A stretch of DNA of 64,000 nt. Origin: Carpediemonas membranifera BICM (Eukaryota > Protista > Fornicata). Under the pieces are notes generated by a model. That model saw only the letters and a program-made list of their open reading frames with translations, did not search any database and had not been told where the DNA came from. The position numbers and the translations under genes are program-made. Each line of letters opens with the position of its first letter. Positions within the stretch are counted from its first letter, which is position 1. The DNA lies in NCBI GenBank assembly GCA_019828565.1, contig JAHDYR010000062.1, positions 74,801-138,800 on the forward strand. Reading direction: 5' to 3'. Below, one piece after another: positions 1 through 36,824 of the stretch.

Positions 1-1302
1 CAATGAATGTAAATGTTTACGTGTTCTCTTCGTCCCTTCTATCGTCCAGGATCTGCTGTCAGACGTCCATGAGCGATCATCCCTTGTCCTGCGGAGCAGC
101 CCAACATCAGCTCCAGCTGTTCAGAGCATGCGTACAATGCTTCCGGGGCATGTAGAGTGATCGTGTAGGAGCTTTTATGACGATTCCAGGACGTGGAGTT
201 CAGGAATATGTCCGTATTACCCAGCAAATTTCATCATCTCCATTATTGCTGCAGTATTCAAAGTAAACGCGAACAACACGATTTATCTCCATTCATTGGC
301 GCCTCGAGGAGCGCTTCAGTGCCTCTAGAGCGTGCTTCAGCAGCATTTCGATCGAGATTAAAAATCACCCGAATTCTAGCTCTGTTCTGGCCGCTGCAGG
401 CACCGCTGGGCGCAATAGAGCTCGGAGCGGCGTTGTCTGCCAAAAAGAGCATATTGCTCCCGGTGAAAATTGAACCCACGACCTGGAGGCTGTGTACAAA
501 GTCTCTTCCCTCTATGCCACGACTTATGGGAAATCCGCCCTTATTAAGCTTCCTACAGGGAATATAGGCCATTTTGGAGGTATGAGCGACTGGGAGGGGG
601 GGAATGGGGGGCATTTATGGTATGGCTGGACTCTACTCGGGCAGACTATTATAACGAGGCTCCATCAGACCTCTACGGCCGCTATACGAGGAGAAACGTG
701 CCAGTAAGGGCACTAGCGGCCTATGGCCGCAGCAGCGCCCAGCCAAGCTCAGCTATAGGGTCACCTGAGGCCCCGAATGACGTGCTGATCAGGTCGACTC
801 CCATCTATTGACTTGGTAATTGCAGAGGTCTGAACGCGATGTCCTAATAACCGACTTGGTCGGAGCGGTTCGGCGATGACTCCGCTGTATTCCGCGCCTT
901 CTTCTGATGCCGAAACATGCAGTCCTTTAGAGTCAACGCGCGTCCTGTCCGTCAGGCATGAAGGGCATTCAGCAGAGGCATTGCTGCGGTCTGCAGGCCG
1001 CCCCAGCGCTTCAGGATGGCCAACTGGATGATCTGGACCCATGTCTATCAAATCCATTTTGATCACATCAAACGTGTGTCAAATCCGGCAAATCGATTTT
1101 GCGATAAAAAAAGGGGCAGAGGGGAGGAAGCGACCCATAAGTCGTACCTATGGACCATTTCCTCCCCCCTGCCCGCTTTTTGAGTCTCAACTCTCAATTC
1201 CAATTTGTCCCTATGTTACTTTTTTCTATTGCTCTTTCAGCGTAAAAATGAACAATTGGTTTTGATTCATTCAAAGTTCTGCTCACAAATTGAAGAGAGT
1301 GA

Positions 1303-2231
1303 ATGGTCGTAACTGATTCAGAGAGACTGAACATAGCAACACTTCTCGGAAGTGGAATGTCTATAGCAAACATTGCACGCGTAACGGGCCGTTGCCGCAA
1401 TGTCATCTATGATATCAAGGCCAATAGAGCGAAATGCTCTGGAAAGAGAGTGAGACCAGCTACCAAGATGAGCCCAGAAGTGACGAAGTATGTACGTGAC
1501 TATGTTCTCCAGAATCCGGCTGCTCGGCTTAGCGACATAGCCACTGTCGTGCAGCTGAAGTTCGGTATTTCAGTATCGCTATCCAGCCTCTCCCAGACGA
1601 TACTACACAAAGAGAAGCTTACGCTCAAGGTCGGTGACACCAGATGGATGGAAAGGAATCCAGAGGAAGCCTGGCGTTTCCGTTCATTCTACGCAACGGA
1701 GATTGCCCCGTACTATTCCACCGATCAAGTCTTCTTCCTCGACGAGACTAGCTTCGACCCCCGTCACCTGGCGGTCAAGCGAGTGCGCGGCCCAAAAGGC
1801 GTTAGGACATATGCTTGCCGCAAGGGTGGCCCGGTCGGCCAGCGTTACTCGGTGTGCGCGACTCTTGGCGTCGAAGGGATCAAGCACAGAGTCATAACGA
1901 CAGGTACATTTACTGCTGACAAGTTTCTAGACAATACCATAGAGTTGCTGGGGATGATACCGGGTGCGTCCTCGTGATGGACAATGCCTCCATACACGCA
2001 CTCAAGGGCAAGCTTGACGCCCTAATGCAACTCTATGATGTCCGCATCGTCTTCCTCCCTAAGTATTCGCCATTCTTGAACCCAATCGAGGTTGTGTTCG
2101 CGTGGATCAAGGCGTTTGTTCACACGCACTTTAAGGACATGGGGCGTTTGCCGGCAATACTCGCCGCCTTTGATGACGTTGCCAAGAAAAACATAAGAGG
2201 TCTCTACGAGAAGCATGGATATTCCCATTAA
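1303..2231 (+). pseudogene. IS630/Tc1-type DD35E transposase, frameshifted near 1960-1975
   Basis: N-terminal HTH region, FLDETSF, DNASIH, FLPKYSPFLNPIE. Colinear with the intact paralogue 36825-37793. Confidence 0.9.
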
Positions 2232-2237
2232 AGCTGT

Positions 2238-2439
2238 TTATTCTCTCAATTCTTGGCTGGATGCAACAGATAGAGCTGGCTGAGAAGGTTCGCTGCGCTC
2301 TGCTTCCTCCAAAGACGCAAGGAACGAGATAACGCGAGAGTACCACTCGGGCTTCACTGGGATGGAGATAAAGCCGTGCGACACTTCTCTCCGCGGTGCA
2401 GGCTGATAGTCAGAGGATGAGGGCGTCGAGTGCGGCTTC
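2238..2439 (-). pseudogene. 3' half of the IS630 accessory ORF2 (5' half at 19161-19410)
   Basis: PHSTPSSSDY...FISIPVKPEWYSRVISFLASLEE matches the C-terminal half of the intact copy 36380-36817. Confidence 0.85.
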
Positions 2440-2493
2440 CATACTGTCCAGGGTGCAGGAATTTCCCTTATTGGGTAGGGGAATTTCCTCGGG
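2440..2493 (+). repeat. Left TIR of giant element, followed by GGAATTTCC/GGAAATTCC subterminal repeats to ~2537
   Basis: CATACTGTCCAGGGTGCAGGAATTTCCCTTATTGGGTAGGGGAATTTCCTCGGG. Confidence 0.95.
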
Positions 2494-2680
2494 CTTTCCC
2501 CCGAGGAAATTCCCTGATTGGATAAGGGAAATTCCTGGTGGCTCACTCAATATTAAACTGTTTTAATTAATTATGTCATGTGCGTATACTTCATCGACTC
2601 AAGTAACCGCTTCTGCAAGCACTAATACACTAGTGCTCACAGTGTAGAGTTCTATGCCTTGCAAAAAAAAGTTTTTATGC

Positions 2681-2815
2681 AGAATTGGCGATATCTAGAG
2701 ATTGACACGTTGCCGTTTTTTGCAAATGATGCAGGCGATCCCATACTATCATTCGTTGGGCTTGCCCGATTTTTGAAAAACGGCAACGTGTCATTCCCGA
2801 GATATTCCCAATTCT
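2681..2815. repeat. Long imperfect inverted repeat
   Basis: Perfect 18-bp core TGACACGTTGCCGTTTTT (2703-2720) / AAAAACGGCAACGTGTCA (2776-2793) with imperfect outer arms. Confidence 0.85.
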
Positions 2816-3492
2816 TTTTTGTTTCGACAGATTTGACCATGTGTGCATTTTTAGGCGTATGAACAAACAGCCATATCTCAACGAATACGAGTCATAACAG
2901 CTTAAAACTTTGTTCATGTACGCAATACACGATGTTTCACATCATGCAACCAATAGTGTCAGTGTACGCTCACATTCTTGGTCGGTCAACGCATGACAAA
3001 ACTGAGCCGTTGGAAAGAACAAAGTGAATATTTGGAATGTAGGTCAAGTGTAGAGCACAACTATGTGTTTTTTTCCGAGGAGTCATCGTTCGCTACGGAT
3101 CCCGCGGATTATGTCACGAAATGATGACGGACTTGCGAGAAAAAAAGCTGAACCGACTAATAATGATAAAAGGTGATTTAGGCAGCAGTTGCGTTCCTTT
3201 CGGAGATCTTGACGATCAACCTGAGTTTATGCGCGTCAAGTCTTCTCTAAGATCCAAAATCAGTCAAGTAATTATGTGGTTCCGTTTCAGCGAAGTTTTG
3301 CTGCCGGAATATGCGGGGTTTCCCCCCGTCAATCCCAGGGGCGTCACTTTCCTGCTTGGTCGGGCGTGTGGTTGATTATTGTCTCCCCCGCTAAATACAA
3401 CTACGATTTATGGACAGCCTTCTCTGCATAGACACACGTCAAGACGAACACCGTTCTCACGATCATCCCGAACCTTGATAAACAGCCAGTCT

Positions 3493-5985
3493 TCATTGTT
3501 CCATGACTTTCGCGCTCGTCTCAGCATGCTTTCCTCTGCTTTCCCACAAATGAGCGACGTTCTGCTCGAATTTTCTATTCAGATCGTTGACATCAGACTT
3601 TGGCAACGTTTCTGTCATATCCTGTTGAATACGAATCCATTGAGCGTGATCTTTGCAACATTTGTGTACTCGGAGGCTGATCAGAGGGGAAAGAAGTGGT
3701 ACGTGGCCCTCACGTCGACCATAAGATACAGGACCGCGCAGGAACCGATAGAACATCTCCGCTTGTTCTCTCAGAATAACTTGCTGCAGAACTGTGTTCC
3801 TCCTCAAATGTACACGAGCATCCTGGTTGCCAATGAAGTCTCTCTCGAAGTACTCCTCAATGATGACACCAAAAGGAAGCATTGTTGCGGCTTGTATCTC
3901 GGGAATGGTTGCGACAATTGCATTGCTATATAGCGTCTGAGTGAATGGCCGCATTGATTTTGCCTCGGATGGTGTGGGAACCGGGATGGGCTTATCAGTG
4001 ACCAAGGAGAGGCTTACATGGAGTAAGTGGACCAACAGTGCAGCAACTCGATGCCACCACACGATATCTTCCGTCACTGTCGCAGTTGAGTAATAATGGG
4101 AGAAAAGATATCCCATTAGTCTGAAGATGGACTGAACAGAGACAGGAAACGCATGATAGTACGTCGTTGCCATGTTGGCCATCAACCTGCGGCCTAACAT
4201 ATGCTCATTACACCCAGTTGTACGATCTGGCGGTTTGAAATCTTGGATAGATTGCAGATAACGTCCCCACTGAGCGTTCTCTTCTCGTGAGCCGTCATTC
4301 CGCGGTTTGAACATTCCCGCCATTAGGGCCACCTGACCCATGAAATGATGGCAACAGTGCATGATTGGGGGGATAAGAAACACACTGTCAGGAGCAATCG
4401 ACGATCCCTCAAAGAGAGTTTGACGTAACCTTCTTCTTCTGTATTCCAACGAACGCCTTCGGTCAGTCGCCAGGAGAAAGCTGCCCCAGTGCGCGGCAGG
4501 ATCTGGAATACCCGATGTAGATTCAGCAATACTACCTTCTTTGGCTTGGAGGACGTGCTGAAGTGTGGTCCGGAACGTGGCGCCAAACGGCATCCAACCC
4601 ATGTTTCGCTTACTATTCGATTGGAAAGGCGATGGATAATGCCCTCCTTGCAGCGAGCCCACAACTGTCGACATGGCAGGGTGGTCACCAATCAGCAATA
4701 CTCTGTTGATTCTTGCCCACCTTCCAGTTTCTCGCACTTGGAATGACTTCTGGATTGCCTCTTCCACGTTAGACTGAATATACTCAAAGTATGTTGGCAA
4801 AAGATCCTCCTTTCCCTGGTACTCAAGCAGTCTGAATGGTGATGTCACTCTCTGCGGAAAGACCTCTCCTGTCATGTCAATCAGCCTGAATTTGACAGCG
4901 GTCGTAGTCCCTCGCCATGCATCAAACCAGATGAGAATGTCAACTGGAATGTAGCTAGCTTCAACACGCGCTTCTCTGCTAACATGTGTCGTTGTATCAT
5001 ACCAAATATCTCTGGCTGTCTCGAGATACTGTGGTGACTGAATGCCTCGTGCAATACGGCTGGAAATGTTATACTTAACCGACTTGACAAAGGCCCACCG
5101 ATCGCTTTTCAACTTGGTGGGGTTGAGGTGGGAAAGCATGGAGACACATTGATCTCGTTCATCTTCGCTGTTGAAGAAGATAGTAATGTGCGTTCCATCA
5201 TGTAAGTAGTTGTTGACCGGAACCGGCAAGGAGCCTATTGCGTCAGCTGCAATTGGGAAACGTGTCGTATGTTCGAGAGGGAACTTCTGGTTGTTTTGAT
5301 CATAACGAAACGTGTTGTGCGAACAGTGTATCTCGTCTGGTACAAGACTCTCGAAAAAATCTGCCTCGTGATCTTTCATGGCTTCTTTCACTCCGAACAC
5401 GTTCCTAATATCACACCCAAGGTCTTTGAGAGCATAATGTGAGACATCAAACTTCATGGTCTGGATACCCAGCCTTTTGGCGATCGCGTTAAAGACAGTA
5501 ACCTCATCATCAACGACATTGACACCTTCAGTGATCCGCTTGAGCGCCATTGCGAACTGAAATGCATGCTCGGTGTTCTCAATCTTCTCGAGTAGCAGGT
5601 GGTTGTCCTCGCACAAGCTATCTCTCTCGTCCGACGCAGGTGAGAAGGCATGGGACCATGTTGGTGTGTACTCTCTGACAGTAGCACATATGTTACGTCG
5701 AAAACGATCCGTATTACCATCAAGCAAGGAAACAAAGACAGGATCAAGAATGCTCTTGTCAATATCACCATCAGTTAGAGATAGCAAGACAGCCTTGAAC
5801 AACGAACGCGAATCCTTATCGCATTGACGGAACCGTCGATCCATGCCATTAGCGTGGTGTCCTTGGATCGAGGTGTAAACGTTTGCTAGAATGACATTGA
5901 CGGCGGAAACGCTTGATGGTGCTAGAATGTTACCGTAAGGTGTCATTCTCCAGATGACCAAAGTAGCTTGTGTGGAGATATGCAT
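3493..5985 (-). CDS. Putative DDE transposase of the giant element (CMC/Transib-like)
   Basis: 830-aa ORF with motifs in the expected order: ILIWFDAW (D1), LLIGDHPA (D2), PPIMH, LPFGVIIEEYFE (E, similar to Transib/RAG1 region). Located next to the left TIR. Confidence 0.65.
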   Translation of the reverse strand: MHISTQATLVIWRMTPYGNILAPSSVSAVNVILANVYTSIQGHHANGMDRRFRQCDKDSRSLFKAVLLSLTDGDIDKSILDPVFVSLLDGNTDRFRRNICATVREYTPTWSHAFSPASDERDSLCEDNHLLLEKIENTEHAFQFAMALKRITEGVNVVDDEVTVFNAIAKRLGIQTMKFDVSHYALKDLGCDIRNVFGVKEAMKDHEADFFESLVPDEIHCSHNTFRYDQNNQKFPLEHTTRFPIAADAIGSLPVPVNNYLHDGTHITIFFNSEDERDQCVSMLSHLNPTKLKSDRWAFVKSVKYNISSRIARGIQSPQYLETARDIWYDTTTHVSREARVEASYIPVDILIWFDAWRGTTTAVKFRLIDMTGEVFPQRVTSPFRLLEYQGKEDLLPTYFEYIQSNVEEAIQKSFQVRETGRWARINRVLLIGDHPAMSTVVGSLQGGHYPSPFQSNSKRNMGWMPFGATFRTTLQHVLQAKEGSIAESTSGIPDPAAHWGSFLLATDRRRSLEYRRRRLRQTLFEGSSIAPDSVFLIPPIMHCCHHFMGQVALMAGMFKPRNDGSREENAQWGRYLQSIQDFKPPDRTTGCNEHMLGRRLMANMATTYYHAFPVSVQSIFRLMGYLFSHYYSTATVTEDIVWWHRVAALLVHLLHVSLSLVTDKPIPVPTPSEAKSMRPFTQTLYSNAIVATIPEIQAATMLPFGVIIEEYFERDFIGNQDARVHLRRNTVLQQVILREQAEMFYRFLRGPVSYGRREGHVPLLSPLISLRVHKCCKDHAQWIRIQQDMTETLPKSDVNDLNRKFEQNVAHLWESRGKHAETSAKVMEQ

Positions 5986-7633
5986 GTCCTCCCAGTTTTG
6001 TTTCCTTTACGTTTTTTCGCTGTTTATATTGGTCCTACGTAAAAAATGTCGATGCCATTTTCTCCACCTCATTTTGGCAGTGCAGTTTAAGAACAGCTAT
6101 AGGGGGAACATGACTGATTCTAATCACAGACAATTGTCGCTCAGTGTTTGTGACCTTTACTGGAACTCTTGTGTCCTGTGCAAAACTTTGCCCAACAACC
6201 TGCCGGGCTATTTAGAACAAGCCACAAGGGTCTTCTTTATGTTCCCTGCGCGTTCGCATTTCTATCACATCTTTCAAGACCTGGAGACGTTTGATGACAT
6301 GCTTCAGCTTGCTTGTCTTCACGCGCAAGAGCTTGAGAATTCGGATCAGGCATCGCAGGTTGCCCGGATTCTCTCTCGCGTCATCAAACTGCGAAGCCAT
6401 CCACAGCTAAGCATGGATGTTCAGCTTCGCGAAGGCGAATCGCTGCCCGACCGTCTTCACACGCTTATACAAGGGACGTTGTGGGCCATACTGAGGACGG
6501 TGACCGATGGTGACTCGAGCGCTCTCTGGTTCATGTGCAGGAAGTTCATGTTTTCACATAGTGTTGCTAAGAGAGATCGGACTGTCATCAAGAGCTATGA
6601 TGCATCAGAGCTCGTGCATTATTGTGGGTTTGTCTTCCACGACAATCATCGTTCATTCCGTCACCGGATCATGCGGTTCTGGTCTGATGGCAAGTGTTTC
6701 TTCTTCTCAACCAGCAAGGCGTTCTACATTGGCAACTTGTGGTTCGCTCGTGTTACATCTGTCCATCAGGCGGTTTTCCCCGCAGCCATAGCTGAGAAGC
6801 TTGCCAAGATGCATCTGTGGTGCAGGCATCGATTTGTTCTTGACTGCCACTGCAACACTTACATCATGTTGCACACAATGCACGGGGTGCTCGTTACAGC
6901 GCCTTCTCAGGAGTATGGCGTTAATATGATGGCTTGGTTTGGACACGATGTGGCCCTCACTCACCGATTCTCTTCGTTTGCTAAGGTGAAACTTCCCGTC
7001 AATCTTGGAGGGATCAGGGCCGTGCCTGGACTTGTTATCTTGTCCGGAACGGTCCGGGCATCCAAGACAAAGAATATAGTCCCAGCCCAGTTCTTCACCG
7101 GTAATACCACTGGTCATATTCCCGCTGATGACATGACGGATGTCGCCCATCCGGGGTTCAGGAGGACACCTGTCTGGATCGACGCAATCATCTTTGTTGC
7201 ACAGTCTAGGTTTATGATCGTTAGATCTGGCAATGATTGCTATCTCATCGGTAGATCCCGACTCATCCCCAACATTGTCCGATCTCTATTTTTGGACCCA
7301 AACCCGATTCCTTGCAGCGAACATGAGGTGTATAGGTTGTACCCACTTTCCAAGTTTGTGCTATTGCCCAACAACGTCCTTATCTATGTGCGAGTAGACG
7401 GCGGGAGCAGACAAACTGTGGTTTCGAGACAATCGCATGGGTTTCCTGCTATTGCGCGCTTTGAGGCATCAAAATATGCAGTGACACTGATGGATAAGTC
7501 CCCCAGCACTTACTGGCTGTTCAACCCACTCAACAAACGGTGGTACGCGTACAACAATATTCTGCGGTGGACACCAACTCTTCCATGGATGCCGTTGTAT
7601 GAGAAACCAATACCAGCAGAAATTGTTGTTTGA
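5954..7633 (+). CDS. Hypothetical cargo protein (~510-560 aa; likely start near 6110)
   Basis: Long uninterrupted ORF divergent from the transposase; no motif recognised. Confidence 0.7.
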   Translation: MTKVACVEICMSSQFCFLYVFSLFILVLRKKCRCHFLHLILAVQFKNSYRGNMTDSNHRQLSLSVCDLYWNSCVLCKTLPNNLPGYLEQATRVFFMFPARSHFYHIFQDLETFDDMLQLACLHAQELENSDQASQVARILSRVIKLRSHPQLSMDVQLREGESLPDRLHTLIQGTLWAILRTVTDGDSSALWFMCRKFMFSHSVAKRDRTVIKSYDASELVHYCGFVFHDNHRSFRHRIMRFWSDGKCFFFSTSKAFYIGNLWFARVTSVHQAVFPAAIAEKLAKMHLWCRHRFVLDCHCNTYIMLHTMHGVLVTAPSQEYGVNMMAWFGHDVALTHRFSSFAKVKLPVNLGGIRAVPGLVILSGTVRASKTKNIVPAQFFTGNTTGHIPADDMTDVAHPGFRRTPVWIDAIIFVAQSRFMIVRSGNDCYLIGRSRLIPNIVRSLFLDPNPIPCSEHEVYRLYPLSKFVLLPNNVLIYVRVDGGSRQTVVSRQSHGFPAIARFEASKYAVTLMDKSPSTYWLFNPLNKRWYAYNNILRWTPTLPWMPLYEKPIPAEIVV

Positions 7634-7845
7634 CCCACATTGCCCAATAAACGCGTAATAGAAACGTCTCCACACCTTCCCCACCTTCCCCAGCGGGGAC
7701 GACAGTCAATCTACTGCAGCGAATTTGCTGCCGTGGGATGATGTTGACCCCAGTGAGTGGCTAACCCCGGCCGGCCGCTGTATGTAGATAAGCCGCAAGT
7801 GATTAAATTACATAAAGGCTGGATCGCTTCTTCCTTCCTTTACTC

Positions 7846-9075
7846 TCACAATGCCAGACTCGGATTCAGTGCCAGGAGGCTTTCCTTGCAGACCTGGCAA
7901 AATAAGAACCTGGCAACGGTTCCATCAATCGAGGTCTCCCACATGGCCACACCGCATGGCTTGCAATACCAAGATTTGCACATGTTGCAGAAGAAAGAGT
8001 CCCTTCCCTTTGACGATTTGATCTTAGCCTTGCAGCGGGTGCATTCAGAAGCAGCAGCACAATCCGGACACGTGAAATTGGTAATGGCCTTCTTCCCATT
8101 GCTGAGCCACCTCACGCACCTCCCATGGTAGTAGCGGTTGCATGATCCGCACTGGGCGAAGTCAGTTTCGTTCTCCGGATTGCCCAACCAATCCGGGGAA
8201 GTGCAATGCCCGCAGCAAAATGCTAGTTGACGCATAAACATATCGAAAGAAATCAGCGGACCTGTCTTCTCAGCAATGCTGACATCACTGTCATCACTGT
8301 CATCAGCAGTAGGACGCTTCAGCTCTTGCTGATGTGCCATATCGAACTTTCGTTCACCAACAACGTATTGGTGAAGATCCTGGATCATTTGGTGTTGGAC
8401 CGAAGGATTTGTCAGAGAAGAGTCACGAGCGGGAGTCTTCGCATCTCTTTCAGTCTTAATGGATCCAAGAAGGCTGTTATCGTTGAGCAGTGACTCAGAT
8501 TTGATTGGAGACGCAGGAAAGCTGGGTTCATCTCCCCTCAGCCTTTTGGTCTGCACGCTTTGCTTGTGATATCTTTGCCTGGCATCAAGAAGTAGACCTG
8601 TCGGGAAGATGAACTTCATCTTCTTCAGGTTCTCGATGTCCATATCAGGGGCGTTGGCTAGTCTGAGGACATTCGCCATCTCCTTCATGAAAACTGACAG
8701 ATCCTTGGCGCTAGGCTTCTCTTTCGGCGTCAACTGGTGGTAGATGATCGGCTTAGTCTTGGTGTAACCGAGCTTATAACCCAAATCTCTCGCCCAGTCT
8801 AGCAACCCCTTCTCGTTGAAGTTCTTCTTCTTCAAAGCAACAAAACCACCGTACACAGGGACAAGCAAGTTCGACACGACAGTGTTATAGGCCGATAACA
8901 CGGAGTCTTTGGGCATTCCCAGTGAGAGGCCACTGTCTACGTCGATATCATCGACAATGACAAAGAAGCATGTCAACATGGCCCGAAAAGTGATCTTTGA
9001 AAGATTTGTAGTAAGATCATGACCAGTGAACGCGCGATAGGTTCCAGGAGACTTCTTTTTCGGCACTTGCTTCAT
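7846..9075 (-). CDS. Protein with tandem C-terminal PHD-like zinc fingers
   Basis: CGHC...CGSC.RYYHGRC...FTCPDC (C4HC3) followed by CTRC...CNMCKSWYCKPC...FCQVC. Confidence 0.8.
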   Translation of the reverse strand: MKQVPKKKSPGTYRAFTGHDLTTNLSKITFRAMLTCFFVIVDDIDVDSGLSLGMPKDSVLSAYNTVVSNLLVPVYGGFVALKKKNFNEKGLLDWARDLGYKLGYTKTKPIIYHQLTPKEKPSAKDLSVFMKEMANVLRLANAPDMDIENLKKMKFIFPTGLLLDARQRYHKQSVQTKRLRGDEPSFPASPIKSESLLNDNSLLGSIKTERDAKTPARDSSLTNPSVQHQMIQDLHQYVVGERKFDMAHQQELKRPTADDSDDSDVSIAEKTGPLISFDMFMRQLAFCCGHCTSPDWLGNPENETDFAQCGSCNRYYHGRCVRWLSNGKKAITNFTCPDCAAASECTRCKAKIKSSKGRDSFFCNMCKSWYCKPCGVAMWETSIDGTVARFLFCQVCKESLLALNPSLAL

Positions 9076-9116
9076 TTCGTTCGATATGTTTATAACGTAA
9101 ATGAATTATGTAAAGG

Positions 9117-9494
9117 GTGTCACTGAGAATGAAACCAATGAAACCACATCTAGAAACGCCTGAGGGAGCTGCATCACAAGTGGTCAGCATTTCATCGGAC
9201 ATTATGCGCGGAATTGGCATTGTTGAAGAAATTCAAAGCCGCTTTTGTTTAGATAGTCGCTTGGAATCAATATGCAGATCAATAATGGCAGAAACAGGCA
9301 AAATGAAGGCAATTGGTGCTGCTTATGTTTATGACTACAACAAAGACTCATTAAAGCAGCACGAGTACATTTCATTTGGAGAAGTGCTCAGTTTGACGAA
9401 TACCGTGTGGACATCTGTAACTCATCTCAGACTGATCTTAGAGCTCCCAAAGCGGAGACTGAGAACAGTTCTCGCCATACAATGTCAGGGATGA
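9117..9494 (+). CDS. Possible small cargo ORF
   Basis: 125-aa ORF divergent from the PHD gene; no motif recognised. Confidence 0.3.
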   Translation: MSLRMKPMKPHLETPEGAASQVVSISSDIMRGIGIVEEIQSRFCLDSRLESICRSIMAETGKMKAIGAAYVYDYNKDSLKQHEYISFGEVLSLTNTVWTSVTHLRLILELPKRRLRTVLAIQCQG

Positions 9495-9562
9495 CCTGAT
9501 ATCTCTATTTCGCGGTTGCTTGTTCCGCCCTGTCGCCGTGCCCATTTACTTCAACTGCTCCA

Positions 9563-11188
9563 CTAGCATGAACGCCCTTCCAGGGGAAACTCCAGCTTCT
9601 CTCCCTGTGTTACACGAGCTTTTGTCTTCTTCTCTCGAGAGTGCTGTGCGATGATAGCCTTCATCTCAGGCGTAAGACCGAGGTCTAGGGGTGGGACCGT
9701 TATGAACTTCTGGCCCCCGTACCTCATCATGGTGCTATTGATCCGAGTCCACAAAGCTCCAGCCACATTGTTCCTCTGGAACAGTTCCATCAAGGCAGCG
9801 AGAGCAACGTAGCGGTCAAGCTCGATTGTTGCCTCCTCGGCGCGCCTGATAAGCTCCGCCCAGTTGTCTTCGAGTTCATCGGCGAGTGCTTCAAGCCCAG
9901 CCTCACTCGCGCGTGCCAACTCTGCTTGAGTAAACTGATGGATCGCCTGATCCTCGCCCTTCTGCTGACCTAACTCAGCTTCTAGTCTCTTCTGGGACTC
10001 CTCAGAATCTCTGTTAGCCTGTTCAAGCGCCTCCCTCGCCTCCCTCTCCTCAGCAAGCCGTTTCATCAAGGGCTCGTACTGCTCCAACAAGCGCACAGAC
10101 TCGGGTACATCATCAAGGCCTGCAATGGTGTCGTCTAGCTGTGCTAAGCTGTGATTAAGCAGGGACACTGGCTCGCGGACGTCATGATCGGCCTCTGCAT
10201 CAACATCGTAAACCGTCTGGAGACCAACGGTGTCTGTGTCGTCCACATCGGACTCTACTTCGACGTCTTGATCAGTCTGGGGCAAAGGAACGCCGTCACC
10301 CTGCATGGCGGCCGGTTCAGCGTGGCCATCGGACTCGTCCTCGTCAGTGTCGGAAAATTCCACGGCGTCGCTGGCGGGTGGTGTCACATATGCATGCCCT
10401 GTATCTTGCGCATAGGATGCAGTAACGAGTTCAAGCGAGTGTATGGCTTCCTCGCGGTCATTCCTTGCCTGAATAGCTTCGGCGGCTGCCTTGGCAACAT
10501 CTCGACGCAACCGCTCAAGCTGGGCTGATGTCACATCGCTTCCCGGATCATTCTTGCAACCAGAAAGAATGTCCTCGTAGGGGGAATGCACGCGGCGGGC
10601 CTCGACAGTGCCCTCAGGGGCGACGAAGAGAGCGCGAAGGATCAGGTTGACTTGATCTGGAAGAAAGAGACGGCCTGTTCCTTCTAGATGAATAGAGCCA
10701 CGATGTGACGGCATGACAGCCTCGCGGTTATCCTCAAAGGTGATCGCTGATCCGGTGTAGTGGTCAAAAAACTGCTTCCGCACGATTTCAACCTGATCAT
10801 CCTCCATAAACAAGCCTGCAGGAACCTTAGACAGCTCGGGCCGGGCAAGGTCGTCACTAATGGCCATGAGCTCGGGAAGGGAAGCCTTGTTGATGAGATC
10901 CATTAGTGAAACTCGGCCAGCGAGACCAAACACATCACGAATCTCGTCAATGACGATGTTATCGACCAGCGCGCATCTCAGGGCTGTCTTCGTTATCACT
11001 TTGTGCTCCTTGAGGTGCTCCAAGCGGCTCTTATTCGTCCGGAGTGCGAACCATCTCTCGAACATACTCTTATCTGCTCGAATAGCCTTACGCTCTTGAC
11101 CAGGTGCAGCAGAAGCAATCCTAACGGTCTTCTCATGATGCTCACGAATCCAGCTGCGTAGAATAGTGATATCTAGCATCTTTTCCAA
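9563..11188 (-). CDS. Hypothetical acidic coiled-coil protein
   Basis: 541-aa ORF (start uncertain) with a D/E-rich central tract and E/A/R/L heptad-like segments. Confidence 0.75.
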   Translation of the reverse strand: MEKMLDITILRSWIREHHEKTVRIASAAPGQERKAIRADKSMFERWFALRTNKSRLEHLKEHKVITKTALRCALVDNIVIDEIRDVFGLAGRVSLMDLINKASLPELMAISDDLARPELSKVPAGLFMEDDQVEIVRKQFFDHYTGSAITFEDNREAVMPSHRGSIHLEGTGRLFLPDQVNLILRALFVAPEGTVEARRVHSPYEDILSGCKNDPGSDVTSAQLERLRRDVAKAAAEAIQARNDREEAIHSLELVTASYAQDTGHAYVTPPASDAVEFSDTDEDESDGHAEPAAMQGDGVPLPQTDQDVEVESDVDDTDTVGLQTVYDVDAEADHDVREPVSLLNHSLAQLDDTIAGLDDVPESVRLLEQYEPLMKRLAEEREAREALEQANRDSEESQKRLEAELGQQKGEDQAIHQFTQAELARASEAGLEALADELEDNWAELIRRAEEATIELDRYVALAALMELFQRNNVAGALWTRINSTMMRYGGQKFITVPPLDLGLTPEMKAIIAQHSREKKTKARVTQGEKLEFPLEGRSC

Positions 11189-11632
11189 AATTTCACAGCA
11201 ATGCAGTGTTATTTTCAGAGTGAATATTTTGTTCTTTCGAAATAAGATGCAGGAAGAGCTTTAGTATATAGCACGTACGACTGAAGGCATTTTAAGCATG
11301 TTTATAGCATGTATATGCAGGTAGTTGATTGTAGGTACTGTCAAAATTTTCTGTTTACGCAAAGCAATATAAATATGCCAATTCATCACGTAAAACTTCT
11401 GGAGCCGTGTTCAGACAGTCAGAGAACCCACCATACCGCTTTTCAGCCAGAATAGACTCAACCCTAATTTTGCTTTACGTATATCTCGGTAAATAGACTC
11501 GAACGATATGTAAAAATCTTGGATCCGTCCTAACATATCAAATACTACACATATACCAAGTTTCAGCCAAATCCAAGCCGAGAAGATCACCCCCGTCAAG
11601 CCCATGGACAATGGTAGGTCAGCGTGGTTTTG

Positions 11633-11790
11633 GCGAAAATAACAGTGCATTGCTGTATTCCAAATGTATGACTTATAGTGCAATGCACTGTTATTTTCGC
11701 AGAGCCGAACTTGGACGTGGCCAGAAACTGACATCGCTGAAAAGCTCAGAGACGTCGTTATATCATCTATAACGGCATCTCTGAGCTTTT
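11633..11790. repeat. Two adjacent inverted repeats in an AT-rich spacer
   Basis: Perfect 21-bp arms 11633-11653/11680-11700; 23-bp arms with 2 mismatches 11740-11762/11768-11790. Confidence 0.9.
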
Positions 11791-12076
11791 AAGCACAGTT
11801 TCATCCTGACGTGGAGATTGATGCTTGATAAATTGAAGAATCGACTAGGAGAGCTCTACGCTTGCATGCAGCCTTCTATTAGGTTGTTGATGTTGGTTAT
11901 ATGCTTCTTTTTCGTTCTCGATGCGTGTGGATGAGTATTCTGTTGCAAGATTCATTTTGATGGACTGATGTTGGTTATAGAGGATAAAGGCACCAGAATG
12001 GATCATATGCATGCTATAAACCGTTCTGTGCCGTTGGTCGGACGGCTTCAGAAGTCATTGTATAGAAGGAGATCGT

Positions 12077-13386
12077 TTAATGGTCATCACATACATCATG
12101 GTATTGCGGGGAATCATGGTAGTGAGGTGATTCGATTTCGAGACTCGGTGGTGAACTGCGGACAGGAGATGGAGGCGGACTTACAACAGGCGTGGCGGGG
12201 GCTGGCGTTGAAGGCGGAGTGGGGGATGGAGACGGGCACGGAGATGGATACGGCGAGCTGTACGGCATACACCTTACTGGAAGCGGCATCTCCGGCCACT
12301 TGACGAACCTGCACCGCCGGGCAGTTAAATCTTCAGGCCTCTTCTTGTTCCGTTTTAGTTTCGTCATCGCTCTGTGCAGAACAAGACGCAATTTTCGCAC
12401 AACATTTACGTATTTACCCAGTTATGTGTCGGTATATGTTCAAACCACGGCCAGGCCCCACCGGGGGTGAGTGTTGGGCATGCGCCGGTGTTCTTAGGAC
12501 TCATGGTTTCGAGTTCAATGCTACGACCCTTTCGAATCGCATCTCTAAACTTTTCCTCCAGGACCCCAGTTGGCAGCAGTCGACCATTCTCTTTCGCTGA
12601 TCTACAGAGAGTAAGACCTGTTCAGTGTCATCTAACAGAAGCGGACTCGGCTTGGCGACGCATTCATGCACGCGCATGATGACCTTGAGCTTGTCAAGAC
12701 ATTCGGCAGCAGTGGGACGCTTCGTTGGGTCGAAGTGGAGCATCTGCATTGCCAGGTCGTACATTCCGAGGCAAGTGGGTGGCGTTGTGCCGCGAATCGG
12801 TAGTGCAGAGTTCACGTTCACGAAGTTGAGACAATCTCTGAGCGGTTCGAGTGTCTTACGTGACAACTGCAACTGCCCACCATAGAAGTGGCACCAGTTC
12901 AGCAAGCTACCAAGCTTCAGCATCTTATTCTTCTTCTTGTTGTCGATCTGCGCCATGTCAGTCACCTTCGCGGCAAAGGGGGACTTGGGGAGACCGTAAA
13001 AGAGCAATGACTACACCGCACGAGTAAATGTCGGAGGCAGGTGTGACGACATGAAGAACAGGCGGGAAGAGCCGATGCAGTCATGCGCGTATGCTTGGAG
13101 GTCTCGTATGGCGCTCGTTGACGGCGGAATGACCGAACACGAACACACTTTGAACATTTCTGGGGGTAAATACCCATGCGTGCCGCGATATTCGGATGCC
13201 GATTTCAGTTCTATGGCCCAGTTCTCGTCGCGACAAGCCGGCTTCGTCATAGCAGAACTTCTTCATCAACGAAGTCTGTGCAGGATATGATTGAAATGAT
13301 TGAAAAGAAACAGCCTGACATAAGACCCACCCAACCTTACATGGGTCATTGAAGGGTTGTGTGCCACGCTCTTGGTGCTGTGTCAT
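12077..13386 (-). pseudogene. Truncated, frameshifted protein kinase paralogue of 17404-18657
   Basis: RGTHGYLPPE and YDLAMQMLHFDPTKRPTAAECL fragments. Shares downstream sequence CATGGTAGTGAGGTGATTCGAT with ~17373. N-lobe and catalytic loop not seen. Confidence 0.75.
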
Positions 13387-13421
13387 TGCTGCGTATAAAC
13401 TGCTGGTATAAACTGCGTAGA

Positions 13422-14267
13422 ATGCAGCAAGAAAGTGGAACTGTCAACTTTTGCTGCGATTGCTTTCCGGAAGAGCTTGCGCGTCGTGTCTATGCAAATT
13501 GGGCGGACATGGGCGAAGCCGCGATGAAGATAGACGCCTTGCCTTTCGATGATGACCAAATTGTCGAGCTTGACGGCCAATCGCTCATTTCTCTGAAGTG
13601 CAGCACATGCATGGTGTCAAAGGGCGATGACATGATGTATGGTTTGGTCACGGCTGGCGATGTTGATGAGGGAGAAGTGCTCGGGATTGCCAAGGGTGTT
13701 CTTAGCGATCAGCCTTCTCGGATTCAGCTATCGTCACAGCTGCACCTCATGACTCCTGATGAAGCATGCGTCAACAAGCTTTGCCATCATTCGGCTGCTG
13801 GCAACTGCAGGTTTGCCCTATTCAAGGTGGATAAGAAGCCGATCTGCTTCTTGGTTGCCACCAGCAAGATCCCAAAGGACAAGGTCATCCTTGAAGGTGG
13901 CGGCACTGACGATAATGTCTTTGTCGTGGTTAAGCATGCGAGGAATCGTGATGTACCGAAGGACGTGAAGCACTCAATTTCTCGCGTGGTCCAGGAGGAT
14001 GCAGAGAAGGCGAAGAAGTTAGATGTAATGAAGTCGAAGAAGAAGGCGAAGGCAAAGAAAAAGGAAGCAGACATGACGGAGGAGGAGAAGTACAGATTAG
14101 AGCAGAAGAAGCTAAGAAAAGCATGCGCCAATGGGAGCTGGGAGCCTTCTAAGAAGAAGAAGACGACTGTGAAGAGAAAGGGTACCAAATCGAGGTTGAC
14201 GAAGAAGGACAAGGTGGCCATGACGCACAATGCGAAGACGTTGGACGAGTTCCTTAAACTGTTTTAA
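13422..14267 (+). CDS. Divergent SET-domain-like protein with Lys-rich tail
   Basis: YGLVTAGDVDEGEVLG...G, KLCHHSAAGNC (cf. RFINHSCxPN), ICFLVATSKIPKDKVI (cf. IxxxAxRDIxxGEEL). The terminal YDY motif is absent. Confidence 0.65.
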   Translation: MQQESGTVNFCCDCFPEELARRVYANWADMGEAAMKIDALPFDDDQIVELDGQSLISLKCSTCMVSKGDDMMYGLVTAGDVDEGEVLGIAKGVLSDQPSRIQLSSQLHLMTPDEACVNKLCHHSAAGNCRFALFKVDKKPICFLVATSKIPKDKVILEGGGTDDNVFVVVKHARNRDVPKDVKHSISRVVQEDAEKAKKLDVMKSKKKAKAKKKEADMTEEEKYRLEQKKLRKACANGSWEPSKKKKTTVKRKGTKSRLTKKDKVAMTHNAKTLDEFLKLF

Positions 14268-14355
14268 CCTTTATGTCTCTTCAGCCCGCAGAGACGCCTT
14301 CGAATAGTGGGGTTTAGAGGCGCGCTGATCGAGTCAATGGTCAACAATTGCATCT

Positions 14356-15213
14356 TTACACTGTAGAGAACATACCGAGCTCTCTTAAAAACTGGTAAAT
14401 CTCAACCTCCATCTCTTGACGAGCAATCTGCCGTTCTTCAGTCATGGAAAGATGGTTGCGAAGCTTCTTTCTCTCATCAGACGGCATTGTCAGGCAAGCT
14501 TCGTCGTAGGTGGCATTGCTCGTGGACAGGATAAAGAAATCAGCATTGATCGCTTCAGGGGAGAAGCAGGAGACAATCTTGTTCCAAGGGAGGTTTGGAA
14601 ACACCTTCGCCAGGTGTTCGCGCAAGGCAGCGCGAAGATTGGTCGAGAAAAACTTCTCGTCACTGCGAGGAAGGCAGTACTTGGAGAATTTCTTCGTATC
14701 CTTCAGCTTCAGGAACCGACGCTGTTCTTCAGGATCCAGGCGAGCATGTGGCACATCTGGCGTTGCGTCAAGAGCAACCGCTAAGGTGTCAAGCAGTGTC
14801 TTCATATCTTCTGTCGCAGCAGTCTCAGGGTCAACGCTGCGGAAGGCATGCAGCGCTGATTGGTAAGCAGCTTCTGCCCGCGCTGCCACCTCGTCCTTCC
14901 TCGATGGGTTCATGTGGACAGACTCGGACTCAGTGTTGAATGCAAGTCGGAAACCAGCTCGTGTTGAATTCTTGACCATCTGCTTGAAGTTGTGCGCCTC
15001 CGTCTTCTTGATGCACGACAGAATAGTTTCTTGGATATCAGCATCAGCCTTTTGCAGGACTGCCGTGCAATTCTCCAACGCGGCCTGAGACAACGGCTTG
15101 TAGGTGCGGTACGACGAAGTATTCGCTCTCCGCGCAGCTATCGCTGCTAACTGCTTGCGAGGCGCCTTTCCACCTTGCGTAGGCCGGCGAGCCGTTTGCT
15201 TTGTTCTAGCCAT
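14356..15213 (-). CDS. Histone H3 N-terminal tail mimic fused to an unknown helical domain
   Basis: Starts [30 protein letters not shown]; the remaining ~255 aa lack H3 histone-fold motifs. Confidence 0.9.
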   Translation of the reverse strand: [285 protein letters not shown]

Positions 15214-15274
15214 CGTCTTCTGAATGCAGAATTATATGCAATACATTTCTCACATAAAGCTGCTTTAAAGTGCG

Positions 15275-16955
15275 ATGCCATTTTCTCACCCTCAATTTGG
15301 CATTGGCGTCATGAACGACGATCAGACATTTTTCAATGCAATGGGGTGGAGAAATCGATATCTGGATGGATCAAAGCTGTTTGAATGTGTCTGTGGGGAC
15401 ATCAGTAGCGAAACACGCAACGTCGGTTTTCCCTCGCCATCCCGACGTCACAAGTGCACCCGTACTGCACTGGCGCTGAAGAATACACGTGTCCTCATCG
15501 TGTTCGAGCCAACCTATGGGTTCGTTGCTGGAGATAGCAGGCAGTTTTCGATTGATGAATCTGTCTCCATTGGAGGGCACGCAGAACGCATTCGTCAGAT
15601 CTTTGCGGCAATGCATAGCGAGTATACGGTTATCGAGACGGCCCAGTTCGAGAACGAGGACGATTTTGAGGCGAAAATCAAGGAATTCGGCAAGCTGTAT
15701 GGTGACTATGAGACTTTTTTTCATTATCACTGGTCACTCGGACTCTGATGGTCGGTTTGTGGTCGATGCCCGCACGATACCAGCCATCTGGACAACTGCC
15801 TTCGACTTCATCGAGGCAATTCTGAAGAATTATGAGAGTCATGTCTGCAAGTTCGCCCGAATCATGGGTGTGTATATTGCCGCCTGCCAGTCTTCCGCCC
15901 GTGACCCACGGCCGATCTTTCAGTTGTATTCTGGCAAGTTCAAGTTCACAATGCAACGGTGTGTGGTGCTTTTGACACCAGATGAGCTACCCGCCGTCGA
16001 ACTTGCCGCCCATGACGCCACGTGGCTCATCAGAATCATGACTCAGCCAGATCACCTCCATGAGATCGCGCAATTCTGGTTCTGGATGTCCAAGCTCTCG
16101 TACATGAAGCGAAGAGTCATTATCGCAAGACCTGACGGTTGTGCAAAAGCGAAGATCGTATCGGAGGAAGACGCAAGACTCCCGCCGCGTTGTTATCCTT
16201 TGCTTAACAAGGTTTACCGGCCTGCGTACCCGAACTTCGATTCCACTGCTAAGATCGTCGACTTTCGCTCTCTGCTCTTGATCAAGTCTGAACACGAGTC
16301 ATCTGTGGCCATTGAGTCTCACATCAACAATATGATTGAGAAGAAAGAGATTCCAATCGGCACCAGCGGTCAGCCACAGTCCTTCGTTGAGGAAATTGTG
16401 AATGGGTTGAAGTCATGGAGGAAATACTCGACACACCGTGATGGCAGCTGTGTTGCGCACTGCTGTTGCATGATTAGGGACGGCCATTTCCGGGATATGA
16501 CCACCCTGACCCACAGAACAGATCTTGAGGCAGCCATGGCTTTGCGTGCCGAGCTGGTGGAAAGCCGGGTGAAGCGGACGGCTCTGACGGAGGATTCCGC
16601 TAAGGCAGAACTGTTTTCCAAGATGGGCTGGCTTACCGATGATGCTGTGCGAGAGTTTTCCATGATCTACATGCGTAATGTCATCATGGTGTGCAACAAC
16701 GGTAATAATTCTACAGTGATATTGTTCACACATGGTCACCAGTTTTGGGGTTTGTACCCTTCTGGCGACTCAGCTGCTGATCGTTGTGAGAATTTCCAGG
16801 TGTTCTGTTCCAGACATGGCATTACCCACTTTATTCTGCTCCAGGACGACCATGCGGAACTTGTCAGTCTCCCAGAGGGTATCAAAAGAAAAGCGCAAAT
16901 ACAGGAAGGCGCTCCGTCATCCACAAGTAGACAAAAAGATGATGAGAGTGATTAA
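15275..16955 (+). CDS. Caspase-like (clan CD) + OTU-like double cysteine-protease protein, with a 1-nt frameshift at a T7 run (15715-15721)
   Basis: FFIITGHS and VYIAACQS (His-Cys dyad pattern); RDGSCVAH...MGWLTD...LLQDDHAELV (OTU pattern). Removing one T fuses the two ORFs. Confidence 0.65.
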
Positions 16956-17403
16956 CAGTAAGTACAAGATAGAAGCAAAGAAAGTAGTGTAAAGATCATT
17001 CTGGAAGCGCCTTCCACATATTCCTCAGCGGCCGCCAGCTGCTTTTTGCCGGTAGAGTTCCAGGCCATATCGTCCGGTCGGGTCTTCTGCCTGGGTACTA
17101 CAGGAACGAACACTGTATCACAGCCACCCCACTCCAGTTCGATTCGAGCGTCTACTGGACTGATTTTTCGGTTTTAGTGTAAACAACTGGGTATTGTCTA
17201 TAAAGCCAGCGCAAGGCTGCAGCACGGGAAACAAGCTCAGTCCGGGGTCAGAATCCAAGCACCATAAATTTCTTTCTTTCTTTCTTTTCTTTTCAAGGCT
17301 GCAGCATATCTCCTTTATATCTGGTCGAGTATGCGGCCTCATCTCTTTCTTTGAAGGTGAATGCGATCATCCCATGGTAGTGAGGTGATTCGATACTGGG
17401 CGG

Positions 17404-18657
17404 TTACATATCAATAATCAATGATAGATCACGATGAACCCTCCAAACTCGTCCTCTTCTCTTTGTGTGGGGGTTCATGATGCTTCTGTAATCTTGGTGG
17501 TGTGTCTTGCAAGTTATTGTTCGATTATCGTGAACCGGCATGCCACATGCAATGCATCGGCCAGCAAATCGGGTTTCTCGAAGTGCTTCAACGGTGAGTT
17601 TGGCGGCAGCGAGCGTTTCCTGAGAGATTGTCACCTGGTCGTTGATCATCAGTGGTGTTGATGCGAACGTTACTGCTAGGGCGGCGATATCGTTGAGATG
17701 TTCAGCGCACATCAAAGCTATGGGTCTATCCTCCGGATTATAGCTGAGCATCCCCATTGCAAGGTCATAAAGGCTCCTATACTGTGTCGGAGGGCTTCCT
17801 CTCGTGCAGAGAGTCGGATTGATCATCAAACCACGGGCTGCATTCTTCTTCTTGCTGTGTATCGTGATTTCGCGGCCGTAGAAGTACGCCATGTTATATA
17901 GAGCGCCAATATGCTCGTCTGGGTTACTTGGCTTGCCACCATCCACTCTCACAGATCGAAATGGAGACTTATCCAGTCGCAATGCCATCATGAGGACGAT
18001 AACGCCGCAGGAAAAGATGTCGTATGCCGCATCAACTGTGTGCATGTTGGTGTTTCTGGTTGTGGTGTTCCTGGAAGCCTGGAAGGGGTTCAAATTCTGT
18101 GGTTCCCGCATAGCTACTGTACAATGCTTCGATTTCCGACTGAGTTCGTCGGCACGAAGCTCGGGGGGGATAAAACCAGGTGTCCCTCTCATGTCTTGTC
18201 CCATATACCTGTTAATCCCAGTAGGAGCCTCTATTTTGATGGCAGAGCCGAAGTCAATGAGTAATCCACCGTCTTCTCGGTTGAAAAGGTAGTTGTCGGG
18301 CTTGATGTCGCCGTGGATGAATCCATTCTCATGCACATGGCTGAGAGCTAACAGTAAGTGCCGCAAGTAGCGACATTGATCCGGTACTGGTAGTGCCAGA
18401 ACGTCTCGCCACGACATATGGTCAACAAAGCGAGTGGCAAACGCTTGATCGCTGTCAACAAAGCCCACATCGACGATTGTAACAATAAATGGGCTTTTCA
18501 TTGCCTGAAGTATCGTCTTTTCGTGTGTCAGGCGAAGTGTCATACAGTTATCGACCTTGACGACAGTTTTGACCCCGCTAATGTCGGCAATGTACGTATT
18601 ACTGTAGTTAGTCTTGTGTAGTTGCGTCAAATCGGCAGCGGAGAGCTTAAAGACCAT
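17404..18657 (-). CDS. Ser/Thr protein kinase (Cdc7-reminiscent) with C-terminal Cys/His motif
   Basis: VVK, IHGDIKPDNYLFN, LLIDFG, RGTPGFIPPE, DIFSCG, MLSYNPEDRP; CIAC...CKTHH. The Gly-rich loop is degenerate and the 3' end may be spliced. Confidence 0.9.
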   Translation of the reverse strand: MVFKLSAADLTQLHKTNYSNTYIADISGVKTVVKVDNCMTLRLTHEKTILQAMKSPFIVTIVDVGFVDSDQAFATRFVDHMSWRDVLALPVPDQCRYLRHLLLALSHVHENGFIHGDIKPDNYLFNREDGGLLIDFGSAIKIEAPTGINRYMGQDMRGTPGFIPPELRADELSRKSKHCTVAMREPQNLNPFQASRNTTTRNTNMHTVDAAYDIFSCGVIVLMMALRLDKSPFRSVRVDGGKPSNPDEHIGALYNMAYFYGREITIHSKKKNAARGLMINPTLCTRGSPPTQYRSLYDLAMGMLSYNPEDRPIALMCAEHLNDIAALAVTFASTPLMINDQVTISQETLAAAKLTVEALRETRFAGRCIACGMPVHDNRTITCKTHHQDYRSIMNPHTKRRGRVWRVHRDLSLIIDM

Positions 18658-19106
18658 TTCCACAGACGTCTGTTGCAAAAATGACTTTAAAGTGCGTTTT
18701 TGGCAGATTTTGCAACAGACGTCTGTTGAAATTGGTTTTGAGTACGAATTGTGAAATTTTGAGTCTATCTGCTGAATCAGGAGGCCATTTTGAGTAATCT
18801 AAGACTCACCTCGAACATGTGTCAAATCTGGCAAATCAGAAGTCAATAAAAAAAGGGCAGAGAGGAGGAAGCGACCCATAAGGCGTACTTATGGACCATT
18901 TCCTCCCCCCAGCCCGATTTTTGAGTCTGAACTCCCAAGGAATAATTGTCCCTATGTTACTTTTTTCTAGCAGGATTTAAAGCTCAAAACTACGCATGAG
19001 TAGTCCTCATGTGTAGGCATGTATTCAACCTCATTTATAGATTATGAATACAGCTCGTTGTTGATTTATTTTTTTTCTTACCGAGTCGAAATGCTAGGGG
19101 CTTTCC

Positions 19107-19160
19107 CCCGAGGAAATTCCCCTACCCAATAAGGGAAATTCCTGAACCCTGGACAGTATG
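19107..19160 (-). repeat. Right TIR of giant element
   Basis: Reverse complement of 2440-2493 with one mismatch. Confidence 0.95.
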
Positions 19161-19410
19161 TCAGGAGACCGGCGGGAGGATTAGCGACAGTGGCATGTCC
19201 TCGCATGATCTCGAATGCCCATGCGGCAATCATCCTTCCAGGGAGAGCCCGTGCAATCTCCGAGTTCTCCACCAACGTCCTCATTCCCTGTGTTATCGCG
19301 GAGTTATCAACATTACCATCCTCAGCTGTAGATAAAACATCTTTGAATGGGCATCCAGCCCTGTTGTGGTTCTTGCAGCTGCACAGGCTACACGTTACAG
19401 TTCTCACCAT
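19161..19410 (-). pseudogene. 5' half of IS630 accessory ORF2 (CCHC zinc knuckle)
   Basis: CSLCSCKNHNRAGC and LPGRMIAAWAFEI...PPAGLL match 36380-36817. Confidence 0.85.
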
Positions 19411-19667
19411 CTGTCGTCAATCAAAAAGTTCCAGGCCTAATCAAAATGATGTTCATTTTTAGAGTAAAAGAGCAATAGCAGGATTTAAAGTTTGATACTG
19501 CGCATGCGTATTGCTTAGGTATAGCCAAGTACTACCATACCACTTTGAAGATCCAGCTCCGTCTCATCGTCGAGTTCATTTTTTCTTGCAAAATGACTTA
19601 AAGTCAAGTTTTGTCCTTGACTTTAAGTCACAAAAACTTGACTTGAAGTCAAGGAATTGACAGTATG

Positions 19668-20260: not shown

Positions 20261-20640
20261 TATGACGCGCCCGTCTATCATCTGATTAATTTCTTAAATA
20301 AGGCACTTGAAGCTTTGAAGCCGCCGTTCACGGCAGTGGTACCACTTGTTAGCGCGCTGTGTAATTAGAATGATCTTACGTGAGGCATTCCGCCCCTCCA
20401 CGGTCGTAAAACGGCCGTTTGAATATTGATTAGATCAAATGAGCGCCTAAAACTGCTCATTGTGATGATCTTCGTGTTTCTCTTGGTATGTATTGCTGTT
20501 TTCAAGTGAAAATGACCACACCATTCATTAAACACAGTTTCGAAGCAATTAAACACACGTGTTTAAGCTGGCCAACAGATGTTTCGAAACTCGCTTTGCA
20601 AGCAGTTTTTGACCAGTTGAAAGCTAGAAAGTGGTCAGAA

Positions 20641-22400: not shown

Positions 22401-22751
22401 TGCCTGTTTTCAATTGATCTGATCACTGTTTCGAAATAGGTGTGTTTTATTGATCTACTGGTCATTTTCACTTGAAAACAGCAATGCTTCACGTCGCCGT
22501 CCTTCTTACATAGAGATCGAAAAACGTCATTAGAAGCCTCAATTCGGCTGCGTTCGCGAGTTCTCGCGTTTTTTTGCTCTCGACGGTGCGAAGTTCTCTC
22601 TCGCGGCTGCAAAAGGCCGCGTTCATCCTCAATAACATCAATCGGGCTTGAATTAGCCGTAAATCAGTGTATTTCAGGGTCCATTGAGGTTGGTTGCTAC
22701 TTCTTTCGAGTTGTTGTTTTCTCAGTGAAAACGGGAAGTGACGAACGAGCA

Positions 22752-36817: not shown

Positions 36818-36824
36818 ACAGCAT

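Follow-up and report, generated by a model that had tools for sequence, protein, structure and literature searches.

Within a window of 64,000 nucleotides from Carpediemonas membranifera BICM (contig JAHDYR010000062.1, positions 74,801 to 138,800; coordinates below are those of the window), a 16.7-kb element at 2440-19160 interrupts a reading frame and carries, next to a transposase, several chromatin-related genes and a protein that opens with a copy of the histone H3 tail. What kind of element is this, and what does it do with such a cargo? Our analysis spoke for a giant DNA transposon that was mobile in recent times, best explained as an autonomous cut-and-paste element from a lineage centred on Carpediemonas and akin to the CMCT/RAG1 clade, and showed that a kit of PHD, OTU, SET, caspase-fold protease, H3-tail protein and kinase genes was kept across its deeply diverged relatives. 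This kit probably helps the element to deal with host chromatin. The host is indeed C. membranifera: window DNA matched the assembly GCA_019828565.1 (assembled from Nanopore and Illumina data) at 95-99%, and the homologues of the transposase include named C. membranifera proteins.

Mobility was indicated by both ends of the element. The 54-bp terminal inverted repeats (TIRs; 2440-2493, plus strand, and 19107-19160, minus strand) were 98% complementary, with the termini CATACTG...CAGTATG, the left one lying within a palindromic terminal hairpin that runs to 2537. TC flanks the element on either side (2438-2439 and 19161-19162). Excising the element together with one TC in silico restored a 149-aa minus-strand open reading frame (ORF), in frame, that was 56% identical to an intact ORF of the window (36350-36817; E 1e-55), with no gap at the junction. 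The reading frame thus requires the 2-bp target-site duplication (TSD), which makes it more than a 1-in-16 chance. The original prediction, made from the sequence alone, had announced such TIRs and TSD, and both were confirmed; the clean interruption of a gene with an intact homologue in the window also held, except that this gene is an accessory ORF of an IS630/Tc1-like transposon rather than a host gene. That transposon (1229-19475, plus strand, with a TA duplication) comprises a DDE_3 transposase (1303-2231) and the accessory ORF split by the insertion (2238-2439 and 19163-19410), and has itself landed in a sister giant element (family B), within the right subterminal region of the latter, whose right end resumes at 19476-19667. 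Window 1-1228 and 19476-19667 indeed form one continuous match to the related locus L004 across the TA, and a Ty3/gypsy fragment adjoins this sister end. Since the element lies inside the Tc1-like transposon, itself inside the family B element, it is the youngest layer of the nest.

The search for further copies with 2-bp TSDs, as the original prediction had suggested, was fruitful. A second full copy, 99.65-99.69% identical, was found on another contig with different flanks; about a dozen substitutions separate the two copies, the remaining differences being chiefly homopolymer indels. This copy, flanked by CC and AG without a TSD, may be a recombinant or an assembly chimera of two copies. 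Two further complete relatives have CATACTG ends and a 2-bp TSD, AG in L004 and GC in L006. A hidden Markov model search of 1.84 billion proteins with the transposase gave 27 matches, 16 of them strong, from C. membranifera, the assembly GCA_002919055.1 and a few metagenomes. That assembly, which holds several members of the lineage (including L006, L007 and L010), may contain a Carpediemonas-like protist. Scans of viral, metagenome and prokaryotic genomes returned no relative, and no capsid or polymerase gene was found among its ORFs, leaving an endogenous virus or Polinton unsupported. It should also be noted that the readable insertions lie within other transposons (Tc1, Ty3/gypsy, non-LTR reverse transcriptase), namely in the window, in L004 (7231-14021), in L006 (2171-13799) and in L011 (15753 onward), a nesting that reflects either targeting or survivorship.

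The genes of the element number nine, intronless and tightly packed, with three divergent pairs (transposase/RCC1-like, decayed kinase/SET and H3-tail/caspase-OTU), in accordance with the early count of about nine. Relatives at 21-38% transposase identity kept PHD, OTU, SET and caspase genes and, with weak homology, a counterpart of the H3-tail protein: OTU, caspase, tail-protein homologue, SET and PHD in L006 (11.6 kb, complete); PHD, RCC1 propeller, kinase, tail protein, OTU, SET and caspase in L007; OTU, GNAT and PHD in L003. Several C. membranifera families combine PHD and OTU, some of them also with SET, chromo-like or HEPN-like genes, and gene order and content vary among the relatives. 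The chromodomain-like and HEPN-like (RxxxxH) ORFs were recognised by motif at L001 13094-13897, 20494-20997 and 19535-20026 and at L012 7776-8855. The element, L006 and L007, all rich in kit genes, occupy different deep clades of the transposase tree (a quick version, midpoint-rooted), so that the kit is either old or swapped between lineages. Saturated synonymous sites with a proportion of nonsynonymous differences (pN) of about 0.45 would fit purifying selection, but protein-guided alignment biases these figures and the decayed kinase yields the same ones; more weight attaches to the catalytic residues, which are invariant.

How such an element moves was addressed through its transposase (817 aa; 3493-5946, minus strand; an upstream ATG at 5985 is also possible). 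This protein gave no match in Pfam, NCBIfam or PDB sequence searches, and 20 transposase members of the lineage gave none to the Plavaka, EnSpm, RAG1 and KDZ models of Pfam. As sequence libraries gave nothing, it was placed through structure alone. Its AlphaFold model (predicted local distance difference test, pLDDT, 83) matched RAG1 (E 2e-8), BbRAGL and HzTransib in Foldseek, with structural Z scores (VIA) of 14.9 for RAG1, 14.3 for HzTransib, 12.8 for BbRAGL and 12.5 for the P element; Atlas features (RAG1 0.90, Plavaka 0.89) serve as leads only. The catalytic residues D342 and D421 were each found in 19 of 20 aligned sequences, and E701 in 18. The CMCT clade (EnSpm/CACTA, Mirage, Chapaev, Transib, Plavaka and ESTA, together with Lanisha) is defined by C(2)C and H(3-4)H motifs (PMC12730594). 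The element shares with it a RAG1/Transib-fold transposase with the DDE triad in an RNase H fold, 5'-CA..TG-3' termini and a TSD within 2-5 bp. By contrast, C(2)C after the second D was absent in all 20 sequences (YPSPF here; one Cys in 7/20, no CxxC in register), and H(3-4)H before the catalytic E was reduced to one His or none, position 675 being N here and His in 11/20, and the second His being absent. A separate MHxxH stands at 530-533 of the transposase. The lineage further differs from the clade in its CATACTG ends, its size of 7-17 kb and its up to eight accessory genes.

The modelled fold indicates that the enzyme works like a CMCT/RAG1 cut-and-paste transposase, outside any named family by these motifs. 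KDZ and Plavaka, which the original prediction had named as known carriers of chromatin domains, were not retained as its family. KDZ elements have a TSD of 7-8 bp instead of 2 bp, and no KDZ transposase profile matched. Regarding Plavaka, PF18759 gave no match and the ends are CATACTG rather than TGT..ACA or CATCA..TGATG, PlavakaB, within CMCT, having CATCA ends and a 2-3 bp TSD (PMC12730594). RAGL/ProtoRAG and Transib elements are closer, as the best structural matches and, in RAGL, through a PHD-bearing partner gene; however, their TSD is of 5 bp, the element has neither a heptamer-like TIR nor a CAC heptamer end, and its transposase has lost the Zn ligands and is only 10-14% identical. Nor is there a kelch RAG2L gene uniting propeller and PHD in one protein: here, the PHD and a putative RCC1-like propeller are encoded by separate genes.

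The most unusual part of the cargo is the H3-tail protein (285 aa; 14356-15213, minus strand), whose first 30 residues (15124-15213) copy the H3 tail. The early report of such a sequence on a cargo protein was borne out by 22/28 residues identical to canonical H3 (which may not be the host's H3), plus one inserted Gln, and by a PDB phmmer match at E 3e-6 confined to residues 1-40. Compared with canonical H3, the tail keeps K4, K14 and K18 and has changed K9, S10, T22, K23, K27 and S28; these six substitutions include the K and the S of each of the two ARKS motifs, four sites in all (post hoc P 7e-4, with canonical H3 as reference). The body of the protein had no Pfam histone match and no histone similarity beyond residue 40 or so, and this lack of a histone-fold match after the tail argues against a histone H3 variant. 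L007 bears a similar-sized gene with one frameshift, read through with X, which opens with an H3-like nonapeptide. In leave-one-out profiles searched against 2,642 ORFs, tail proteins were mutual best non-self matches in two of three tests. When the H3-tail protein and the caspase of L007 served as queries in word-based searches, restricted to proteins of similar lengths, only true H3 tails or the queries themselves were retrieved. As far as sequence comparison goes, the tail protein has probably belonged to the kit for a long time, with a tail of varying fidelity.

Divergently from this gene, a fused caspase-fold and OTU-fold cysteine protease gene (559 aa; 15275-16955, plus strand) carries one T too many in a T-run at 15715, which breaks it here; the second copy keeps it in frame. 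Both folds of the OTU plus caspase-like protease originally predicted were recovered in models of this one gene. The N-half gave a caspase fold (Foldseek E 1.5e-5, Z 8.5), with the C-terminal half of the domain poorly modelled, and its His and Cys were invariant in three orthologues. The C-half gave an OTU fold (Z 10.6, root-mean-square deviation 4.0, 132 aligned residues), nearest to bacterial and viral effectors, with the catalytic Cys and His invariant in seven sequences. By modelled fold and catalytic dyads, the product would belong both to the clan CD caspase-hemoglobinases and to the OTU deubiquitinases.

The remaining kit members departed more from what had been announced. The double PHD-like reader (409 aa; 7846-9075, minus strand) has one C4HC3 PHD (Pfam PHD E 0.003), its second unit being a Cys4-Cys4 finger; with homologues in seven other loci, and adjoining the transposase in most loci, it appears to be the core, near-obligate partner of the transposase. 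The SET-like writer (281 aa with a Lys-rich tail; 13422-14267, plus strand) does have a SET fold, according to Atlas features (0.95), structure (TM 0.5-0.6) and SETD8 as top PDB match, but lacks the terminal catalytic Tyr: compared with SETD8, NHS is replaced by HHS and the ELxxDY region reads VILEGG. The SET call rests on these three lines, HHalign of the element's protein with those of its relatives being insignificant (E 0.05). The relatives keep the terminal Tyr (YG) and match EHMT1/2 at E 9e-6, and the writer of the element's own family is probably catalytically impaired. Finally, one of the predicted kinases is intact (417 aa with a C-terminal Cys/His motif; 17404-18657, minus strand; Pfam Pkinase E 1.6e-21), and the second is a decayed paralogue (about 12400-13390, minus strand; tblastn 26%, E 1e-13, in several frames), with frameshifts and stops in both copies of the element. 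An identical 22-mer downstream of both kinase genes (12115-12136 and 17373-17394) reads as a trace of their duplication. For the intact kinase, Cdc7 was the top PDB match, tied with ROCK and others (39.4 vs 38.3 bits), and a Cdc7-like label was discarded as not separable from other kinases.

What could such a kit be for? We lean, by somewhat more than even weight, towards a modulation of host chromatin and ubiquitin pathways that keeps the element expressed and inserting, with the tail as a bait that can be marked only at activating sites; this anti-silencing role we infer from the cargo. As to mechanism, the kit would act in the nucleus, sustaining expression of the element and its ability to insert. 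The PHD protein would read H3 tails and direct the transposase or the enzymes, the OTU may strip ubiquitin off histones or element proteins, and the caspase-fold protease may cleave a chromatin factor or a restriction factor. The H3-tail protein, as bait or decoy, would accept marks at K4, K14 and K18 while refusing methylation at K9/K27 and phosphorylation at S10/S28, and would thereby titrate host silencers that bind the tail. In the element's family, SET would have decayed into a binding module, and the spare kinase into a pseudogene. The bolder proposition, that of a new superfamily-level RAG1-fold lineage with a self-contained counter-silencing machine (an H3-tail decoy devoid of K9/S10 and K27/S28, together with reader, deubiquitinase, protease, kinase and methyltransferase), we advance as tentative and rather doubtful.

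Several observations weigh against this chromatin-modulating role. Within the element itself, SET is without its catalytic Tyr and one kinase has decayed. The OTU, caspase and kinase are not chromatin-specific and need not act on chromatin, and several relatives have PHD and OTU alone. The tail is faithful to H3 only in the element's own family, with about nine residues in L007 and none in L006, whose 274-aa homologue has no H3-like tail; homology of the bodies is itself weak (E 0.012 and 0.07-0.09), the third leave-one-out test having failed. Moreover, E(z)/PRC2 (Polycomb repressive complex 2) has been reported absent from metamonads, which weakens the argument drawn from K27.

Part of these facts can be accommodated by a self-regulation of the transpososome in the manner of RAG2, in which the PHD would tether the transposase to H3 tails, the tail protein would be a competitor or switch for PHD/SET, and the OTU, caspase and kinase would process or stabilise element proteins, host silencing not being targeted. 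In line with this are the RAG1 fold of the transposase and its near-obligate PHD partner, the single or double PHD fingers of RAG2L proteins (PMC10462144), the readable insertions within other transposons (window, L004, L006 and right flank of the second copy) and a promoter motif common to the transposase pair and the H3/protease pair. Yet six enzymes or readers would be required for a single reaction, insertion inside elements may reflect survivorship in a gene-dense genome, and there is no kelch RAG2-like gene, the propeller being RCC1-like and variable. We regard this account, taken as the whole explanation, as unlikely but worth serious attention; it is compatible with chromatin modulation, and both can hold.

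Less probable still, in our opinion, is a virus-like manipulation beyond silencing, aimed at replication, the cell cycle or defence through ubiquitin; a kinase resembling Cdc7 and a protease resembling separase could be its instruments in a host that lacks the origin recognition complex (ORC), and the H3-like tail would then be mainly a nuclear import signal. The rank of Cdc7 among the PDB matches of the kinase and the bacterial and viral effectors nearest to the OTU fold agree with it, as do the N-termini of the relatives, basic but less H3-like. However, Cdc7 is tied with ROCK and others and the host already encodes a Cdc7, 22/28 identity to H3 is more than an import signal calls for, and the PHD, SET, GNAT, chromo-like and H3-tail parts indicate chromatin. 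That the cargo consists of passively captured pieces of host genes, hitch-hiking and decaying, is suggested by the decayed kinase, the Tyr-less SET, the degenerate RCC1-like gene and the variable order and content. This reading is very improbable and largely refuted for PHD, OTU, caspase and SET by the recurrence of the same intronless, tightly packed genes, their catalytic residues invariant, in relatives at 21-38% transposase identity, and the H3-tail and caspase proteins had no close host homologue in 5.8 billion proteins (similar-length search).

Transposon-encoded factors acting on epigenetic marks have precedents. Single epigenetic cargo genes are known, such as SET in HarbingerS and in oomycete MuDR, VANC in VANDAL, and TET/JBP in fungal transposons including KDZ and Plavaka (PMC12730594). 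Each of these, KDZ and Plavaka by description, has one type of factor, whereas the present element joins a reader, SET, two cysteine proteases, a kinase and an H3-tail protein. In viruses too (PMC11738798; influenza NS1, coronavirus motifs), parasite proteins that are not histones carry histone-tail sequence, but these mimics are short motifs; the transposon's copy runs to 30 residues at the N-terminus, with a free ARTK end. A literature search, thin on subscription papers and Repbase, found no paper on the lineage, on this combination of cargo or on a transposon H3-tail mimic. Transposon counter-defence has so far been known from single genes (VANC, SET, TET/JBP); if the chromatin-modulating role is true, a conserved multi-enzyme kit with a histone-tail mimic would mean that a cut-and-paste element manipulates chromatin much as viruses do, and would tell which marks serve to silence transposons in a metamonad without E(z) and ORC. 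In addition, a RAG1-fold transposase that lacks the zinc site and has its PHD partner encoded separately offers a broader context for the origin of the RAG1/RAG2-PHD pairing.

Two other genes look like variable cargo. The first is a degenerate gene of the RCC1-like propeller family (507 aa; 6110-7633, plus strand), related to an ORF of L008 (E 8e-12); its L007 counterpart matches RCC1/WD40_RLD, and such a propeller was recognised in only three of the element types seen. The second encodes an acidic coiled-coil protein (538 aa; 9563-11179, minus strand) without a family match, whose homology to N-terminal domains in relatives was insignificant. A 33-bp motif, 88% identical between 6050-6082 and 15273-15305 (two matches against 0.17 expected), recurs in two divergent promoters, that of transposase/RCC1-like and that of H3-tail/protease, and co-regulation of the two gene pairs is possible. 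Five strong palindromes (z about -8) occur at 2456-2537, 2681-2815, 11633-11700, 11736-11794 and 18646-18742; one overlaps the kinase start codon, an arm of that at 11633 is repeated directly upstream of the coiled-coil gene, and the two copies of the element differ within the terminal and central ones.

Possible traces of exchange were also seen around the element. Its family (A) and family B share a right subterminal segment at 84-86% identity (18806-19023 vs 1063-1228 and 19476-19531), despite transposases only 35% identical and TIRs that diverge after 9 bp, which suggests an exchange of segments between families. Further along the window, 59806-60146 is a fragment 72% identical to the PHD gene of family B (L001 9314-9664), and a 57-bp inverted match (88%) links the interior of the element (17226-17282) to an unrelated site at 31912-31968. 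IS630/Tc1-like elements with a second, unrelated ORF were found at 1229-19475, 20492-22485, 36345-37841 and about 39800-40730, and a 150-aa ORF with a Cys/His start is common to two IS630/Tc1-like families.

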